Position numbers and translations under genes: made by a program. Of a stretch of 64,000 nt of DNA, positions 6,945 to 61,930 are shown piece by piece. The DNA is from Chlorokybus atmophyticus. Taxonomy: Eukaryota; Plantae; Mesostigma and Chlorokybus algae. The notes under the pieces are model-generated. The model had not been told where the DNA came from. It ran no database searches and worked only from the letters and a program-made list of their open reading frames with translations. Position 1 is the first letter of the stretch, and each line of letters starts with the position of its first letter. The stretch lies in contig RHPI01000260.1 in the NCBI GenBank assembly GCA_009103225.1, positions 131,156-195,155 of the forward strand, written 5' to 3'.

Positions 6945-9900
6945 TCAGATCTGCTGCGCTTCATCTTCTAACAGAATTTCATAGACATCGGTACGCAAGC
7001 GCAACTCCTTGTCCTTCATGATGTCCATAAGCTCCGACAGTTCCTTAGCTGAGAGCACCCCCGCAAGCCTTCTAAAACCATCCAGCCATAGCTCCTTAGA
7101 CCTGCAAACAATACATAGTGCTCGGCAGTCAGAACATCCTGTGCATGCAACCGCAGAAAGTAAGGAGCGCAGTGAGTGGGAAAACTTGCTCCTTACCAAG
7201 GGCATATGTGTATTGCACGGAAAAAGGCCCGGCGGGCAGCATCATTTCGTCCCAGGCTCTGGAGGAAAGCGATGTACGCCCTCCACAAAACTACCGAACA
7301 ACGCATAGACGGGTGCTCCACCAAGCGCTCAAACAGTGTGACAATCCTGGTAAGACAGACCAGACATGATCTCAGTGATGTGTAAAGTTGGTAATATGCA
7401 GCCACACAGATAGGCTGCTGTCAGTGACAGGTCTTTAAAGGCATCGTCACCTGTGAACGGTACCCGGACGGGACACTTCCGACTCGACAGCGAATAAAGC
7501 AGTGACAGGAGAAGGATGCTTTTCCAACAGCTTATCAAAGTATCTTCGCAGCCGATTTGAAAGGGCAGCATGCGCCTCGCACTTGATCATGTCGAGTAAT
7601 AACACTGGATTCTGTGGGTAAACTGCCAATGCTTGTTGGACGACCCGCCTTGCTGACGATGGCTTCATGCGCAACAGCTTGGTGCGGGCATCGATACCCA
7701 TCACGTGCATGCCCGCGAGGTATGCTGCGAGCTCCTCAAACTCGGGCAACATTCGCTGTTTTGCGGGCAGAACAAAGGCCAAAACTTCCTCCATGACAGA
7801 TTGTGCAGCAACAACACCTGATCACAGACCGCTAGTTAGGGGTCAAGGGCAACAGGCCATGGTCCTACAAAGCTGCAGAGACGAATCATGCCTTCAGTTA
7901 GAAGCTCAAGAAGTGCAAAACATAGTGCAGTATCCACCACCAGGCGAGGGTGCTCTGCTGCAGACTTCCGCAGACTCTGTAACATATTCCTACCATTGCA
8001 TCACGACATGCTGATTAGGGAAGCATACTTGAGTAAACATCCAACGGCTAGCATATGCTTGCCCATGCAGGCAGATTAAGTTGATTGTGCCAGGAAGCTA
8101 AAAGCCTCCATCGCACACACCTGTATCCTTTGCGAGCCTTTAGCAGGCGTGTTGGTGGAACCATGAAACTGTTGTCATATGGCTTGTAAGCAATGCCTTC
8201 CCCATATGAAGCTAACACATGCAATGCACGCTGCCTTTGCTCGTTGCTGAGCTCCAGAGCGCTGCCTTGGCGCCGAGGCAGCTCAAGCCCAGCCTCCATT
8301 TCTGCAAACGCCCGGACCATGACGGGTGCGACATCAGCACTACTCTTTGGCAATGCAGGCAGCGAGGCTAGTGCTGTTTCATACACGCGCCTGTCCCCCA
8401 CGAGTACGTTGGGTAAGATTTAAAAACAGCATTAACGTTGTAAAGGGTATGCTGCCTAAGAGACACTCCTGATGCAGTCTGCGATAGTGCGATGAGCAGC
8501 AACACAACACACCTTGCGGCAATCAGGCTGCCGGCAGCACTTTCCAGACCAGCATAAAGCGTCCATAGCTCGATGCTATGTCTCTGTTGCTTGAGTCGAC
8601 TCTTGGCCAACTTCGCAGCTGAACCTTTGTCGGTGGAACCAAGCAAGGCCTCAGAGAAGCGGCCCTCTGCAGGGAACGCCTTGGATGCTAGCAAGGCTAA
8701 GTTATGCGTGAACTGTCGCCGCCCTGCTTCCTGATCCAACCACAGACTACTTCCCACCAGTGCAGGTAAACCAGCATCATCTGAATGACACTGCCTGTAA
8801 CAGTTCAATCAGGACTCCAAACAGCAGCACGCAGACAAAACGCGATGAGTATACCTTAGCAGACCGGTGAGGTCTGCGCCAATGCTATCCATGGCATTGC
8901 GGTACGCAGCTCCATAATCATGATTGGAGCTAAACCACTGCTGCATTGGTGCATCGCAGAAGTGCAGGAAACGAAGAAGCAGCTCCTTGCGCACAGACTC
9001 TGTCTGCCAAAGCAGCTGTTGTGAGCAGGGCTGGTTTATGCTTACAATGTTGGGTGCAACAATACGGACACAGGTGTACTCACATCACCTCAACAGAGAA
9101 CAAGAAGTCCTGAAGGTCGTCAAAGAGCACGGTGCGCTCAAGAGCGTCCTCGCCAGCACCTCGTATGGGCTGCCACTGAGACTTTGACCGCGACGACTCC
9201 TCTGTAAGTGCATGAAGCGCGTCAAGCTGCGTGTGTGACAAGTGTAGCGGGTGTGTGCATGACCTGTACCAGCCTTGCCACAAGCCTAATAAACGTGCCT
9301 GCGGCCCAGCGCTTCAATACGTCGACATTGACCATCTTTGCTATCTCTTCATCCGTCGTACCAACTGTCATGCCAAGCCTTTCCATCAGAGCCTCCTCAT
9401 CCTCCACCTGCTTGCCACAAACAAAGTTGGCCTTCAGACCAAGCCACAGATGTACTGTCAACATAGTCATTGAAACCAACCTTGTCGCCGTCATCATTGT
9501 CGTCATCATCATCAGCTGCAACGTCAGCCTCAAGGTCAGAACCAACAGCCTGTGCAGGGGCAACGAGTTCGACTTCCTGCCAGCCGCTCCAGCCGTTGTC
9601 CTCCTCAATGAGCTCTGCCGCCTGATTGCCGTGCGCGAGCTGCTGCTCTTGCTGTTCAAGCCACAAAGCCCAGCCCTGAGCGCTCTGATCACCGCAGCGT
9701 GGAGCCTCGCTGTCCCAAAACTCTTGGAACAGCTTCAGCTTATTGACTTCAGCAGTTGTTATCTGCGGTGCAAACACGTTGTACTCTATAAGCGCTTGGA
9801 ACCTGGCAATGGCAACCTCTGAGTGACCACTTTGCCATTCGAAGCGACAGGAATCACATATGACGTCGAGCAGAGCCGTCTCAGCTTCAGCGATAGACGA

Positions 9901-12184
9901 CAAAAAGCTGGTCCTGTTAGGCTGCTTGGCCCCTGCTCGCAGCCTGTTCCTCTCCAACACGAATGCCGCCGCTGCATTTGCGTGTATCTGCCGCATGGAT
10001 GCGACAGAAAACTTAGAGAACTGGCAGCGGCGAAAGGCAATGTACGCGAACCACAACTTGACGGAGCTGGGATGACGAGACAACGCCCTCTCCCACTTCT
10101 TTACAGCAACGTCAAACTCGTCAGCCTGCGAGCAGGTCTCCAAGTATGCCAGGATGAGGGCTTCGCTGTCAGGATGGTGTTGCAGCGCCCGCTCGTATAT
10201 CGCCATCTTCTTGTCAAGATGCTGCAGGGCAACCTTGCGCCTGCTAAGCCGAATGAGCTCATCCTGGAATGCTGCAAAGTCCAGCCACAGCTGCACGTCG
10301 CCGGGACGCTCTCGTGTAAGCTGGTTCAGCTCTTTCGTACGCCGCAACAGATGGTCCTCAAAGCTTTCTCCTTCTTCTTCAGCGCGTTCTTCAACCAACC
10401 CGGGCACCACAGGCACGAACTCTCCAAGGCTGCCGGGCATGCGCTTGGGAGCGGATGCGCGTGCATGTACGCGCTTCAATCGGCGATCGCGTTCACGACC
10501 AACATGCTTGGAAGAAAAATAGCGGAGCTCGGCCTTCTCAGGGGCCCTTTCACCATCAACCTCCTTTGTGTGGTTTGCATGACTACCCCTTCCATGTCCT
10601 GAGAAGCATGCCTTCATGTCAACCGTGCAGTCCACTGAGCATTATAGGTGATTGACTGGCAATTGCTCAGTTGGGCATCATCCAAAGCATCATGGCACAA
10701 ATGCTTACCTGTGGCAACAGCGCGTTGGAATTGAGCAACATCAAGCCTATACAGTTTGCCGAAGACAAGGTTGTCCTTGTCCCCGTGCGTGTCAAAGAAG
10801 TAGTCCTGCTTGGCATCGCTCACAGCATAACTCCATTCCACGGTTTTCCTGCGCTCGCCCATGCCAGGGACAGCACCAGCGGAAGGTGCAAAGTTCATGC
10901 GACGCAGCTTCTGCCTCTCCAACTCCTTCTCCTGCTTCTTCTTCTCGCGCTTTTTCCTCTTCTTCTCCTTGCGATGAGCCTTCTCTTCCTCCTCTGAGCC
11001 AGAGCTGGTAGCTGCTTTGGGTTCGGCAAAAAAGTCTGCTGCACGCGGCCTTGACTGATGAACTGGCTCTACTGCTTTGTGATCTTCCTGTTCTTGAGAC
11101 GGACTCGCTTCGGGCATGCTTGTGTCTTCATGGCGGCCTGTTTGGCAATCTTCCGGTGCAACGCTCTGCTTTTCCGCCTCAAACAGAGCGCCCAACCTGA
11201 AGCTCGAGTTCGCAAGCCAGTCTGATGCCACGTNNNNNNNNNNNNNNNNNNNNNNNNNNNNNNNNNNNNNNNNNNNNNNNNNNNNNNNNNNNNNNNNNNN
11301 NNNNNNNNNNNNNNNNNNNNNNNNNNNNNNNNNNNNNNNNNNNNNNNNNNNNNNNNNNNNNNNNNNNNNNNNNNNNNNNNNNNNNNNNNNNNNNNNNNNN
11401 NNNNNNNNNNNNNNNNNNNNNNNNNNNNNNNNNNNNNNNNNNNNNNNNNNNNNNNNNNNNNNNNNNNNNNNNNNNNNNNNNNNNNNNNNNNNNNNNNNNN
11501 NNNNNNNNNNNNNNNNNNGGGGGGGTAAAATGGAGAGGGGTTTCTGTGTGCATGAGAGTCACAGCCTGTGTAACCCGTGTGTGCACTTAACTTCACAACA
11601 GCGCTACCATGATGAGTAGCACCAGTCAGAGCATATGCTGAAAACGTTGCCTACCATACCGAAATAACGCACAAGCTCGGAACTTGACACTGTTAACTGA
11701 TTTGCAACACAACGTCACTCGCAGCAGCTGCTCACTAGTGATAGATAGCAACATGCACACGAACAGCGCTTTGCTGTATGCCATGCAATCTTTGCAGGAA
11801 GAGCTTGCGTACTAGGTATAGGAGTGATGTGGAACTTGTGTTTTCATGTCTACATGCACGCAATTGACATAACACAGCACAGCAGAGCAGACTGCGCCTC
11901 AGGAATCACACCAAGCCTCAGGCAGAAGACAAGCATGCACTAGCACCACAAACAAGAGCGAAATTGTAAACAAGCAGTACGAGTCTCTCAAGCAACAGGA
12001 AATTCCATTTGGCGAGCTGCAGCCCACCAACCTTAGCCTGCACCGGAAATAGCCCGCCCTGAACGACCACAGGGAACAGCGAGCCGCCACGAGGCGGAAG
12101 CGCCGCCATACCAGCTCCTACCGCAGTAACAGCATGCGGCGACTGCCGCTCCTCACCCTCGCTGTCGCCGTCGCTGTCCTCCAT
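6945..12184 (-). CDS. NRDE2: NRDE2 (nuclear exosome regulator / nuclear RNAi defective-2) homolog, multi-exon, spans N gap 11234-11518
   Basis: N-terminal SLFPV and DWLANSSF motifs, YFFDTHGDKDNLVFGKLYRLDV, HAT/TPR-like helices (WLDFAAFQD, ALIEYNVFAP), C-terminal RAFFRAIHICPWSKELWLDG...ELRLRTDVYEILL. Exon 1 is 12184-12032. Confidence 0.92.
11234..11518. other. Assembly gap (N run)
   Basis: N bases. Other gaps at 27314-27538, 32272-32411 and 38846-39654; single N at 18684, ~57486 and ~58791. Most are flanked by G/C homopolymers. Confidence 1.
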
Positions 12185-12490
12185 CTCCCCGACCGCACCG
12201 CCGCCCACCCGATCGCCAACACCACCAACACCTGACCCTACGCACGTTACGCTACCTTGCACTGTATGCGGTAGAGTCATACACTGCAGCCGTAATTAAC
12301 GCATACAGCTTACGTACACCATTAAACTTACATTAGTAGCAGCAACAGGCTGATTGTCTTGGCGCAGACAGGCTTCTTCTTATGCTATATTAGTGTGGTA
12401 GGTGTGAGTTGCGGGTGGAGTTGTGTACGGTGATGGTGGTCATGGTCGCTGATGATAAGCACGCTTGTTGCAGCTAGTAGCAGTAGAGCC

Positions 12491-13317
12491 ATGCCGCAGG
12501 AGGTTGCCGTCGCTGCGACGGGTGAGAGCGCCGCTTTCGTGGCCGAGAGAGACCACTTGGTGAACGAGATACACGAGGTAAGGCGTTTTGGGCTGCTGGG
12601 GACACAGTCATGCGCATGGTCATTGATGTTTACTCTAATTGTAGCAATGACTCTGGCCGCAATCGGAACTGCATTGCTTTGCGTGGACGGACAATGCGTC
12701 CATTGTTTGTGGGCTGCGTGCATGAACAGTGCGTTTTTTCATGCATGCAGGCACAGTGCATCTTTCTCATGCACTTAGCGCACATACTCGTACACTGGCG
12801 TTCAGCATAAGCGCCCGCTAAGTAAGCTAAATCAGACGTTGTGCATGTGTCTTGCAGCGGAACAGGTCGCTTTGTGTCGATGGCTTGCTTGACAATAGCA
12901 TTCGCCTTGGAGACTGAGTCTCCGAGTTGCAGTGTGTGATTGAGGCATGACCTGAGTGAATACATACACACCACACTGGAGTCAACCGGCAGGTCAGGTG
13001 GTGTGTGGTTTCAAATGCCACTCAACAAGCAATAGCACATCACACATATGAACAACCAACAGCCTCTACACAAGCAATGTCGCGACAGAGTCAGTGTTGC
13101 CTACTGCGCATATGCACAAAGGGCATGCAAGAGCTTGTTGCGATGATGTGCTGAGCAGGGCTTGAGAGAGCTGGTGGCGGGCATGCGTGCGCTGCACGCT
13201 AGCCTCGAGGCGTTTGGGACATCAGGGACGGAGCTGCAGCAGCTGCAGGCGGTGTGGAGTGTGTTCTACGACTCTGTAGCGCAGCCCGTGTTGGGTCTGC
13301 ATGCAGGCAGGCATTGA
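12491..13317 (+). CDS. DAD1: DASH/Dam1 complex subunit Dad1-like, 81 aa, two exons (12491-12577, 13159-13317)
   Basis: Donor GTAAGG at 12578, acceptor CAG at 13158, phase 0. Protein MPQEVAVAATGESAAFVAERDHLVNEIHEGLRELVAGMRALHASLEAFGTSGTELQQLQAVWSVFYDSVAQPVLGLHAGRH matches the Dad1 pattern F..ER..L..EI...L......LN.SLE.....G.EF......W..FY. Confidence 0.75.
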
Positions 13318-13480
13318 TAGCGAGCAGGTGAACTTCTCCCGCAGCGTAATCAATCAATGTTGGCTCCTCAACAGCGGCAACATTGCAACGCTATTGTAGC
13401 TTGAAGTGGTGGCATGTTCTCATCTCCAAGCATTCAGACGGACAAGCAGCCGTATTGCATGCGACATGATGGAGTCATGT

Positions 13481-13814
13481 CTCTCGAGTTGTCATGCACA
13501 ACAGTTGCGTAATGCTTATGAAGGACTGCTGATCATACAGATGAAATGCTGGGTACGGTTTGGCTTGTTGCCACGCCTCCGCAAATCACATTGCTGGTCA
13601 AGAATCTTGATGGTTGGCGTTGCACAGTCCAAAGTGCGGCAATGCCTCTCGAGTTGTCATGCACAACAGTTGCGTAATGCTTATGAAGGACTGCTGATCA
13701 TACAGATGAAATGCTGGGTACGGTTTGGCTTGTTGCCACGCCTCCGCAAATCACGTGTTGCTGGTCAAGAATCTTGATGGTTGGCGTTGCACAGTCCAAA
13801 GTGCGGCAATGCCT
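13481..13814. repeat. Near-perfect tandem duplication, unit ~165 bp x2
   Basis: ctctcgagttgtcatgcacaac...cggcaatgcct starts at 13481 and 13646; copies differ by a small indel. Confidence 0.95.
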
Positions 13815-14091
13815 TGTGCCGTGGAGGTGCTGCTGGCGATGGGTGCTAATGATTGATCGCCGCAAAACAACCGACATTCACACCTGGATCTGGTCAGCTT
13901 AGTGCGGTTTGAAGTTGCCTGGCATATAAGCTAGTCTCCATCTGGACAGTTGCCTTGTGCAGTTAACACATGCACCTGGCTGATTGCTTGGTGCAGTTAA
14001 GTGTCGATGGCATTGCAGTCGCCAACGGCATTGTGCACGCCACCAGCTGTGCTGCTGGAGAATCACTGACAATAAGATGTACACCCTATGA

Positions 14092-14221
14092 ATGCCCTCG
14101 CGTGAGTGAGGCGCAATATGCAGCCTTAAGTACACAGGATAAGCGCGAGGCTGCTGATGCCCTCGCGTGAGTGAGGCGCAATATGCAGCCTTAATTACAC
14201 AGGATAAGCGCAAGGCTGCTA
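14092..14221. repeat. Tandem duplication, unit 65 bp x2
   Basis: atgccctcgcgtgagtgaggcgcaatatgcagccttaa(g/t)tacacaggataagcgc(g/a)aggctgct repeated at 14092 and 14157. Confidence 0.95.
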
Positions 14222-14858
14222 AAAGCATGCATTTTCACACCATACATCACATACCCAATCACACGCACCTGCAAGTACAACCACTCGGCTAACTGTACCC
14301 TGTTCTTACCTAACTCCTACTGCCCCCCTGTCAGTGATGCATGCATACATGCATCCACAGCAGTGGTCATGTACTAATGTGCATGTTAGCAATGGATGTG
14401 GGCGATGTGGGCGTAAGCATGCCATGCAGGGGAGTGAAAGCTTAGCATGTGCTGATGCATGGTATATAATAGATGGTAGGGGTTGATTAGGCAGCACGGC
14501 AAAGCATGCATACTATTTGTTTACAACACGCAATATTTGCTATAATTGACACTGGGGCATTGAAGGTGGCAGAGTGCACTTATAGATGTACAAAAGTGTA
14601 AAGGGCTAATGCAACTTGCATGGAGTGCTCTGCACAGCACGTAACACATCATATACACAGCATATTAGCATGGTTTAACTGACATCATGCTTTAGTACAA
14701 TTGCAATCAAGACAAAAACATACCAAACATGTTTGCGGTAGAAATTAAATCAATAAATGCCGTAGTGCAGTAACATTGGCGCCTCAACCACTAGTTCATG
14801 GCAGCAAGTCGCTGCCATATGTGGAGCCACATAGCGTTTATGTGTCCCATATTACATA

Positions 14859-59622: not shown

Positions 59623-61930
59623 ATGGCGGTGCTGGACAGCTACACCTGGATTTTTGGAGTTGGTACTGTGTTCTCCTTCATCTCCGCCTTTGGGATTGGC
59701 GCCAATGACATTGTAAGTGTGCTTGTCGGTTGCCGCCTACGAAATGTCATTGTCTCTTGCTGTGCAAGCGGGGTGTTGCATGCGTCGTCGAACTGACTTT
59801 TGATTTTGCTGCAGGCCAATGCTTTCGCCTCCTCCGTGGGCTCCAAGGCCCTTACCATGCCCCAGGTTATACTGATCGGTGCCGTCTGCGAGTTCACTGG
59901 CGCCATTCTTCTGGGTGCGTCGGTCACTGACACAATAAAGTCGAAAATTGCGAAGCCCGAGGCGTTTGCGGCAACACCTGGTACGCTTGTCGAATTGTTT
60001 GTACGATGATGGTGATGTCACGCGGTGGTCCATATGGAGAGCATGAGTAGTGGCTGCATCCCAAGTAGTGTCAGACACATCATGCATGCTGACGTTGATC
60101 CTATCATGTACTGCAGAGCTGCTGATGTATGGCTTCCTCTGCGTGCTCATCGCCGCTGCTTTCTGGGACAACCTCGCGTCCCATCTGGGCCTGCCCGTGT
60201 CCACCACTCACACCACCGTTGGTGGCACCGTCGGCATGGCCATCGTCCTCCGCGGCTTCAACGCCGTTATCTGGTCCAAGAAGAAGAGCAGCTTCCCCAA
60301 ATTCGATGGCATGAGCGCCATCTTCGCTTCCTGGGGTACCTCACCGCTGCTTGCTGGGGTATTTACAGTCGTCCTCTACGGTTTCACTCGCACTGTCATC
60401 CTGCGCTCTAAGGACTCGTTCCGCCGTGCGTTCTACATTCTGCCCATCTTCGTCGGCCTCACCTTCTTCATCGTCACCTTCTTCATCATCCAGACAGGCA
60501 ACAAGAATGCCACCTGGAATACCCCTGTGGCCAACGGCAAGGCTGTTTGGATCTCCGTCATCGTCGCTGTAGGCTTTGCGATCTTGACTCTGGTGGCTGT
60601 CATGCCCTTCCTGAAGCGTTCCCTTGAGCGCGAGGATGCCATCCTCCAGGACATGGCTAATAAGCGCATTGAGGAGGCGAAGGGTCTGGACACTGAGAAG
60701 GGTGCCACTGTCGCTGCCCCTGATGGCGAGCATGCCCAGAGCGTTGAGGCCCTCTCCAAGACGGCCGCAGGCCAGCGCCAGCTCGATGTGGACATTGCCA
60801 ACTTCGGTGGTGGCTTTCACTTCCCTGGCGAAAAGGCAGTGTCTAGATGCTTTTCCGGCTTGAGGGACAGCAAGCTGGGCCAGAACCTTGTGATGCGCAC
60901 CTTGTTCTTTGTAAGTGACACACTTAATGTGGAGCATGCATGCTGGTGCTCAACAGAGCAGTGCAGTTGGCATGTATTGTTCCTTACTGGATGTGTTGAT
61001 ACAGGGTGCCAACTACAAGATTCATGATGATATTTCCAAGGACCCAACCACCGAGCGAATCTGGGCACAAGCTGAGGTGTTTGACTACAAGACAGAGCGC
61101 ATGTTCCGCTACCTGCAGGTGTTCTCCGCCATGGTTATGTCCTTCGCGCATGGGTCCAACGATGTTGCCAACGCAATTGGTCCCTACACCGCTATCTACC
61201 AGATCTGGAGGACTGGTGTTGTCTCCAGCAAGTCCAGTGTGCCAACCTGGATCTTGGCTATGGGTGGAGCTGGTATCGTTGCTGGCCTTGCCACTTTTGG
61301 GTACAAGATTATGTCCGTCCTTGGTGTCCGCACATCTAAGCTGTCCAACTCTCGTGGCTTCTGCGTGGAGCTTTCCACTGCAACTGCTGTTGTCCTTGCC
61401 TCTCGCTATGGCCTGCCCATCTCCACCACGCAGACCATCACTGGCGCCATCATTGCAATCGGCTTGTTTGAGGGTCTGAAGGGTCTCAACTATAGGGTCT
61501 TGTTCCGCATCTTCTTCGGCTGGGTCCTGACACTGATCATTGCGGCTCTTGTTGCTGGCGTCCTTGCGGCCTGGGTAAGTCTTCTTTACCTTCATGGTGC
61601 AATACACTGTTCATACCTACTTGGTTACAATATGTGACTGTTCATGGCTCACCTTTCGTTGCTCTGCAGGGTGCGTATGCTCCTAACAAGTTCCAGACTG
61701 ACGACTTGGTCTACGTCAACCAGTACATGAATGCTGGTTCCAATGCTCTATTGGTTGCTGCTGCTGCTGGCGGTGATGCGACGGTTGCCTCGTCTGTGGT
61801 TGCCATCAACAGCACCCTTGCGGGTCTTACTGGCGCTATTTACCAGTACCCCCGCCTAGTCACCACCACCTTCAACGACTCCTTCAACCTATTCACGTCC
61901 ACTGTCTGCTCAGCCTCTCCTTCCCTTTAA
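59623..61930 (+). CDS. PTB: PTB / PHO4-family (SLC20) Na+/phosphate symporter; exons 59623-59712, 59815-59980, 60117-60910, 61005-61574, 61670-61930
   Basis: Both PHO4 signatures: GIGANDIANAFASSVGS and FAHGSNDVANAIGP; PVSTTHTTVG; SRGFCVELSTA..GLPISTT; intact frame, strong codon bias. Confidence 0.97.

Follow-up and report, generated by a model that had tools for sequence, protein, structure and literature searches.

A transcribed and spliced gene for Dad1, a subunit of the DASH/Dam1 complex, in the streptophyte green alga Chlorokybus

The Dad1 locus, its transcripts and its neighbours

The window, by which we mean the whole 64-kb stretch of DNA analysed, contains on its plus strand a two-exon gene whose product is an 81-94 aa protein of the Pfam family DASH_Dad1. 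Exon 1 of the mRNA extends over 12407..12577, its 5' end being a minimum given by a contig of 456 nt in run X2 that begins at 12407 and departs from the genomic sequence at 12575/12577. It is followed by a phase-0 intron of 581 nt (12578..13158), bounded by GT at 12578-12579 and AG at 13157-13158 and located between E42 and G43 in the numbering of the 94-aa protein. The coding part of exon 2 (13159..13317; 52 codons plus the TGA at 13315-13317) carries the central part of the Dad1 domain, with its L..SLE, G.E and W..FY motifs, and leads into a 3' untranslated region at 13318..13482, whose end is approximate, a contig of run X1 covering 13157-13482 and the X2 contig reaching 13443. A prior reading of the letters by themselves, hereafter the sequence-only reading, had joined 12491-12577 to 13159-13317 over a phase-0 GT..AG intron into a protein of 81 aa starting at the ATG at 12491, and these coordinates are right.

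The start codon may be the ATG at 12452 or the one at 12491. The former lies in frame 13 codons 5' of the latter and within the mRNA contig; it is used by the public gene model and gives exon 1 a coding part of 42 codons (12452..12577). From the second in-frame ATG, this part amounts to 29 codons (12491-12577). The predicted length of 81 aa is therefore correct for a start at 12491, while the public model counts 94 aa from 12452. Upstream, a short plus-strand ORF (12433..12477), 14 codons long and out of frame with Dad1, was deduced by translation; it is situated inside the mRNA-like contig, overlaps the ATG at 12452 and has its stop 14 nt before the ATG at 12491. Furthermore, the context at 12491 is better than that at 12452 with respect to a purine at -3. 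In run X4, which comes from a relative, an in-frame upstream ATG is found 4 codons before the conserved MPQE, with a TGA ahead of it, and the difference in length is a multiple of three. The Dad1 domain, whose onset is at about F29 of the 94-aa protein, is the same whichever ATG is used.

The gene is already part of a public gene set, in which it stands unremarked. The model concerned, EukProt EP00898_Chlorokybus_atmophyticus_P000448 (jgi/Chlat1/1403/Chrsp12S01971), is 94 aa long and carries a precomputed match to PF08649. In a word search, its residues 1-42 are 100% identical to the ORF at 12452-12775; the translation of 12452-12577 makes up its beginning and that of 13159-13314 its end, the two lengths summing to 94. 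The gene had been described as hidden, a term which does not hold, since this public model exists and the gene is missing only from a plain ORF track. On the other hand, the host had been correctly placed in the green lineage, as the EukProt name is that of Chlorokybus atmophyticus. Chlorokybus is an early-branching green alga of the clade that, among streptophytes, lies furthest from land plants. Its genome has been published (PMC7027972), and the sequenced strain, CCAC 0220, has been renamed C. melkonianii (PMC8611356).

Four public runs from two studies were aligned to positions 11700-14300. They consist of assembled contigs, which carry no strand, RNA ends or expression level and whose status as RNA is presumed; the spliced forms speak in favour of it. 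A joint at 12575>13157, which after a shift of +2 corresponds to 12577|13159 with GT..AG ends, occurs in all four runs, so that the junction proposed from the genomic letters is borne out in the assembled contigs of each of them. In X2, a single mRNA-like contig of 456 nt spans 12407-12575 and 13157-13443, and in X1 the spliced unitig reaches a depth of 685 versus about 11-14 for the unspliced path. The gene is transcribed and spliced at 12577|13159.

Two other arrangements were seen in these data. In X1, the normal acceptor at 13159 is also reached from a minor donor, CAG|GT at 12992/12993, with a depth of 24 versus 685; this splice form would read into an intronic stop and be non-productive. 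In X3, a contig of 282 nt carries exon 2 followed by exon 1, then 58 letters without a match and exon 2 a second time (recorded as "goes back 775"), and is probably an assembly loop rather than biology.

Runs X3 and X4 derive from relatives that are 90-95% alike to the window and have the same junction. Among the listed sites at which they differ, 11 of 12 are third codon positions, and the twelfth (13202) changes S to N. By our arithmetic, the chance of at least 11 third-position sites in 12 is about 5e-5. Judged from these substitutions, Dad1 is under purifying selection in sister Chlorokybus species. We infer from the pattern of the runs (one identical from 2021, two diverged from 2021 and one from 2013) that they fit the RNA-seq study of cryptic Chlorokybus species (PMC8611356).

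Dad1 is arranged head to head with a minus-strand exon that has an AAG|GT donor at its end at 12032 and an ORF start at 12280 or 12184. This exon is probably the first of the NRDE-2 gene, located at 9397-11231 (Pfam NRDE-2, E 5e-59). An X1 contig of 3973 nt is unbroken from 12578 to 12032 before departing from the window sequence, so that the 5' ends of the Dad1 and minus-strand transcription units meet or overlap. Between the NRDE-2 coding exons and Dad1, the scaffold has a gap of 285 N (11234-11518). Past 12032, the X1 and X2 contigs continue with 30 nt that are absent from the 64-kb window, and the exon that follows 12032 is probably inside this gap. The continuity of Dad1 with NRDE2, singled out by the sequence-only reading as a point to confirm, is thus unbroken as far as the exon at 12032 and the link is likely, while the N gap intervenes and the next exon is absent from the window.

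Close to where the Dad1 mRNA contigs stop on the 3' side, two tandem duplications begin: a unit of about 165 nt present twice at 13477-13814, with copies 99-100% alike, and a unit of 65 nt present twice at 14092-14220, with copies 97% alike. At 60050-61637 lies a gene for a PHO4-family phosphate transporter that is divided among two or more ORFs (Pfam E 7e-30 and 3e-58).

Assignment of the protein to the Dad1 family

Both exons were searched separately, and the full-length tests were run on the database protein P000448. The latter matches Pfam DASH_Dad1 (PF08649) over positions 2-55 of the 55 of the profile with 38.3 bits (E 1.5e-9), above the gathering cut-off of 31, which upholds the Dad1 assignment that had been proposed from a residue pattern. 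No match of P000448 to the Pfam families of other DASH subunits (Dad4, Ask1, Dad2, Dad3, Hsk3, Dam1 and Duo1) was obtained at E up to 10. Exon 2 alone scores 20.9 bits (E 4e-4, profile positions 17-55 of 55), which is below the cut-off of 31, and exon 1 alone has no Pfam match. In the PDB, the sole matches of P000448 are the Dad1 chains of S. cerevisiae (8q84_L, E 4.6e-5) and C. thermophilum (6cfz_F, E 0.004); exon 2 alone gives weak matches to the same two chains and to no others.

A search of 1.84 billion representative proteins returned 10 at E below 1e-3, namely P000448 itself, six short proteins and three long ones. All six short matches other than P000448 pass the Pfam Dad1 model. The three long proteins are repeat or LRR proteins which appear with similar E-values and were rejected as false matches. 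A profile word search gave 132 matches, and PF08649 is recorded on all 120 among the matches listed, the named ones being all fungal. Three of the proteins with PF08649, from Maublancomyces, Rhizina and Dispira (P0026, P0031 and P0038), bear the NCBI name 'Dolichyl-diphosphooligosaccharide-protein glycosyltransferase subunit dad1', a naming that mixes up DASH Dad1 with a protein to which it is unrelated, the OST subunit DAD1.

All 2021 six-frame pieces of the 64-kb window were scored with a Dad1 profile from which the Chlorokybus row had been left out. The piece with exon 2 ranks first (29.2 bits, E 1e-7, profile positions 28-71) and the piece with exon 1 second (13.0 bits, E 0.01, positions 7-27), the third piece scoring 5.1 bits. 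With exon 1 matched up to profile position 27 and exon 2 from 28-29 onwards, both halves join without gap or overlap.

Residues F29, R33, L36, L54, L58, G65, W75 and F78 are kept with respect to the family. The LNRSLE motif is changed to LHASLE, N55 and R56, which are near-invariant in the mostly fungal alignment, being H and A in Chlorokybus; the R of this motif varies also in the three closest relatives, which are not fungal-like. AlphaFold2, used with an alignment of 49 sequences, predicts one long helix over residues 22-92 with a core pLDDT of 88-98, a shape that one would expect of a bundle subunit and that is not discriminating by itself. The look-alikes of exon 2 according to a language model are small DASH subunits with scores of 0.81-0.85, in which Dad1, Dad4 and Hsk3 clusters are mixed, and are taken as a lead only.

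We consider membership of the Dad1 family to be established with very high confidence, because the Pfam score, the PDB matches, the library matches and the position of the intron agree. The two-exon Dad1 gene proposed by the sequence-only reading has thereby stood up, with a gathering score passed, matches that are reciprocal and an intron position common to fungal Dad1 genes.

Intron position, relatives and origin of the gene

Three distant fungi, Dimargaris verticillata, Podospora anserina and Pneumocystis wakefieldiae, whose Dad1 proteins were mapped to their loci, have a phase-0 intron in Dad1 at the same alignment column as Chlorokybus. This column is just ahead of the residue aligned with G43. 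The position supports common descent of an intron-bearing gene; parallel intron gain at an AG|G site could conceivably have led to the same arrangement.

The highest identity to any other protein of the 1.84 billion in the library is 38%, and three proteins of metagenomes or Logan assemblies come nearest, with 34-38% identity. The closest of all, P0002, is a protein of 82 aa with 38% identity and has in common with the Chlorokybus Dad1 a tail of the form FY.(S/T)VA.P. Its gene is intronless and is found at 31-279 of L001 and 39-287 of L002 (JGI metagenomes 3300057222 and 3300057138), on compact eukaryotic contigs with 46% G+C, next to genes for an Endonuclease V and a dual-specificity phosphatase; an atlas look-up of a neighbour returned generic eukaryotic clusters only. 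Should it come from a green picoalga, the distribution of Dad1 among Viridiplantae would be broader. Another of these relatives, P0010, is on a Logan contig with 76% G+C.

The sequence-only reading had called for a phylogeny with fungal and protist Dad1, and had thought a Dam1 complex in this alga informative for the question of vertical loss versus horizontal transfer. In a tree of 60 Dad1 proteins, the Chlorokybus protein groups with the three metagenome and Logan relatives, outside the clades of Ascomycota and Kickxellomycotina, and is thus not nested in the sampled fungal clades. The tree is weak and based on few columns, and between vertical descent and old horizontal transfer it is undecided because of these few columns and of long branches.

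These results bear on two rival explanations. The resemblance to Dad1 might be due to chance, a short helical protein mimicking the Dad1 pattern: the protein is indeed short and helical, exon 2 alone stays below the Pfam cut-off (20.9 versus 31 bits), and the three long repeat or LRR proteins came up in the library search with similar E-values. However, the full P000448 passes a curated cut-off across the whole profile, its PDB matches are Dad1 chains only, the short library matches are Dad1 in six cases out of six, both exons are matched independently and contiguously, and the intron position is common to fungal Dad1 genes, so that a chance resemblance is already close to refuted. Alternatively, the gene might be foreign, whether the assembly is contaminated with fungal or other DNA or a fungus recently passed the gene on by horizontal transfer. 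Dad1 is commonest in fungi, all the named matches are fungal, and the scaffold gap (N run at 11234-11518) is 0.9 kb upstream. Against this stand the occurrence of the same gene and junction in four runs of two studies, including diverged relatives, the presence of an intron of 581 nt, a G+C content of the gene of about 53%, as in its surroundings, and the lack of any gap between Dad1 and the divergent minus-strand exon at 12032-12280. Moreover, the best fungal identity is 34-38% with no nesting in the sampled fungal clades, and the same 64-kb window holds the NRDE-2 gene and the PHO4 transporter. Contamination is unlikely, and a foreign origin taken as a whole, recent transfer included, appears highly improbable.

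A possible Dam1-like complex in Chlorokybus and comparison with known systems

Dad1 is a small alpha-helical subunit of DASH/Dam1, the microtubule-tracking coupler of yeast-type kinetochores, and we know of no role for it outside this complex. The gene is best explained as the Chlorokybus orthologue of Dad1. By analogy with its fungal counterparts, its product would work in a Dam1-like complex, a reading to which we give a probability of roughly 0.6. The long Dad1 helix may pack with other DASH subunits into one five-helix-bundle arm, as it does in fungi, and the resulting complex could help an Ndc80-bearing kinetochore to grip shrinking microtubule ends. The gene might have been inherited vertically from a green-plant ancestor endowed with Dam1-C, followed by loss in other green lineages. 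In fungi, Dam1-C consists of two five-helix-bundle arms; it binds Ndc80 and forms oligomers around microtubules (PMC9998035).

Such a reading has to be set against the known distribution of the complex. Surveys of 2017 and 2023 recorded Dam1-C in fungi and several protist groups (PMC5439489, PMC9998035). Within Archaeplastida, they found it in red algae only and as partial sets (PMC5439489, PMC9998035), and its loss in Metazoa and Viridiplantae has been spoken of (PMC9998035). This agrees with the background given by the sequence-only reading, namely that the complex is best known from fungi and patchy elsewhere. Klebsormidium, Chlamydomonas, Micromonas and land plants were among the species surveyed, and Chlorokybus and Mesostigma were outside the sampling (PMC5439489, PMC9998035). 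Our literature search found no paper reporting Dam1-C in Viridiplantae or tying Chlorokybus or streptophyte algae to Dam1/DASH. Dad1 is present in a lineage where it was thought absent; taken by itself, it is one small subunit.

How much of the complex accompanies it is a matter of weighing. The conservation of Dad1, which has no known independent role, suggests that at least some partners are retained. The subunits of Dam1-C resemble one another closely in phylogenetic profile and evolve as a single unit (PMC5439489), and purifying selection acts over the whole domain in sister species. Both points speak against the view that the protein is a remnant, Dad1 with or without a few small DASH proteins forming no ring and serving a reduced or different role at microtubules, while Ska, as it does in land plants, provides the coupling. 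It is nevertheless conceivable that Dad1 is a lone or partial remnant, because red algae have partial sets only (PMC9998035). Such sets are the rule in these algae, and how the complex might function when subunits are missing has been discussed, as has a second role away from the kinetochore (PMC9998035). Furthermore, Dad1 is the sole subunit shown, from a window of 64 kb, and its LNRSLE motif is altered to LHASLE. On balance, we regard a remnant as rather unlikely. A whole DASH ring in Chlorokybus is what we infer from one of nine or ten subunits examined, and we hold only tentatively, at slightly under even odds, that this alga retains a near-complete and working Dam1/DASH complex, probably beside Ska.

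If this were the case, Chlorokybus would be the first member of Viridiplantae with a yeast-type coupler. The green-plant ancestor would then have had both systems, DASH having been lost by land plants after the split of Chlorokybophyceae, and vertical inheritance from LECA with repeated loss would gain direct support. An organism of the plant lineage would also become available in which both couplers can be studied together. An expressed Dad1 under selection in Chlorokybus adds the green lineage to the holders of DASH subunits, and the common intron position adds gene-structure evidence for common descent.

Among known systems, the fungal Dad1 proteins (S. cerevisiae 8q84/8q85 chain L and Chaetomium thermophilum 6cfz chain F) are the nearest term of comparison. 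They share with the Chlorokybus protein the PF08649 domain, the range of sizes (about 75-130 aa), one extended helical domain and the conserved F, R, L, L..SLE, G and W..F positions. Identity is only 27-38%, and LNRSLE is LHASLE in Chlorokybus. The host of the latter protein is a green alga, in which partners and a ring are putative. The partial Dam1-C of red algae resembles the present case in that DASH subunits occur in archaeplastids, outside fungi, and differs from it in that Chlorokybus belongs to Viridiplantae (Streptophyta). Dad4 is likewise a small helical DASH subunit, a structural paralogue of Dad1 located in the other arm of the complex (PMC9998035), but the Chlorokybus protein does not match Pfam Dad4 at E up to 10. 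Finally, the Ska complex (Ska1-3) of animals and land plants is presumed to do the same job, tracking depolymerising ends at Ndc80 kinetochores (PMC5439489), with unrelated proteins.
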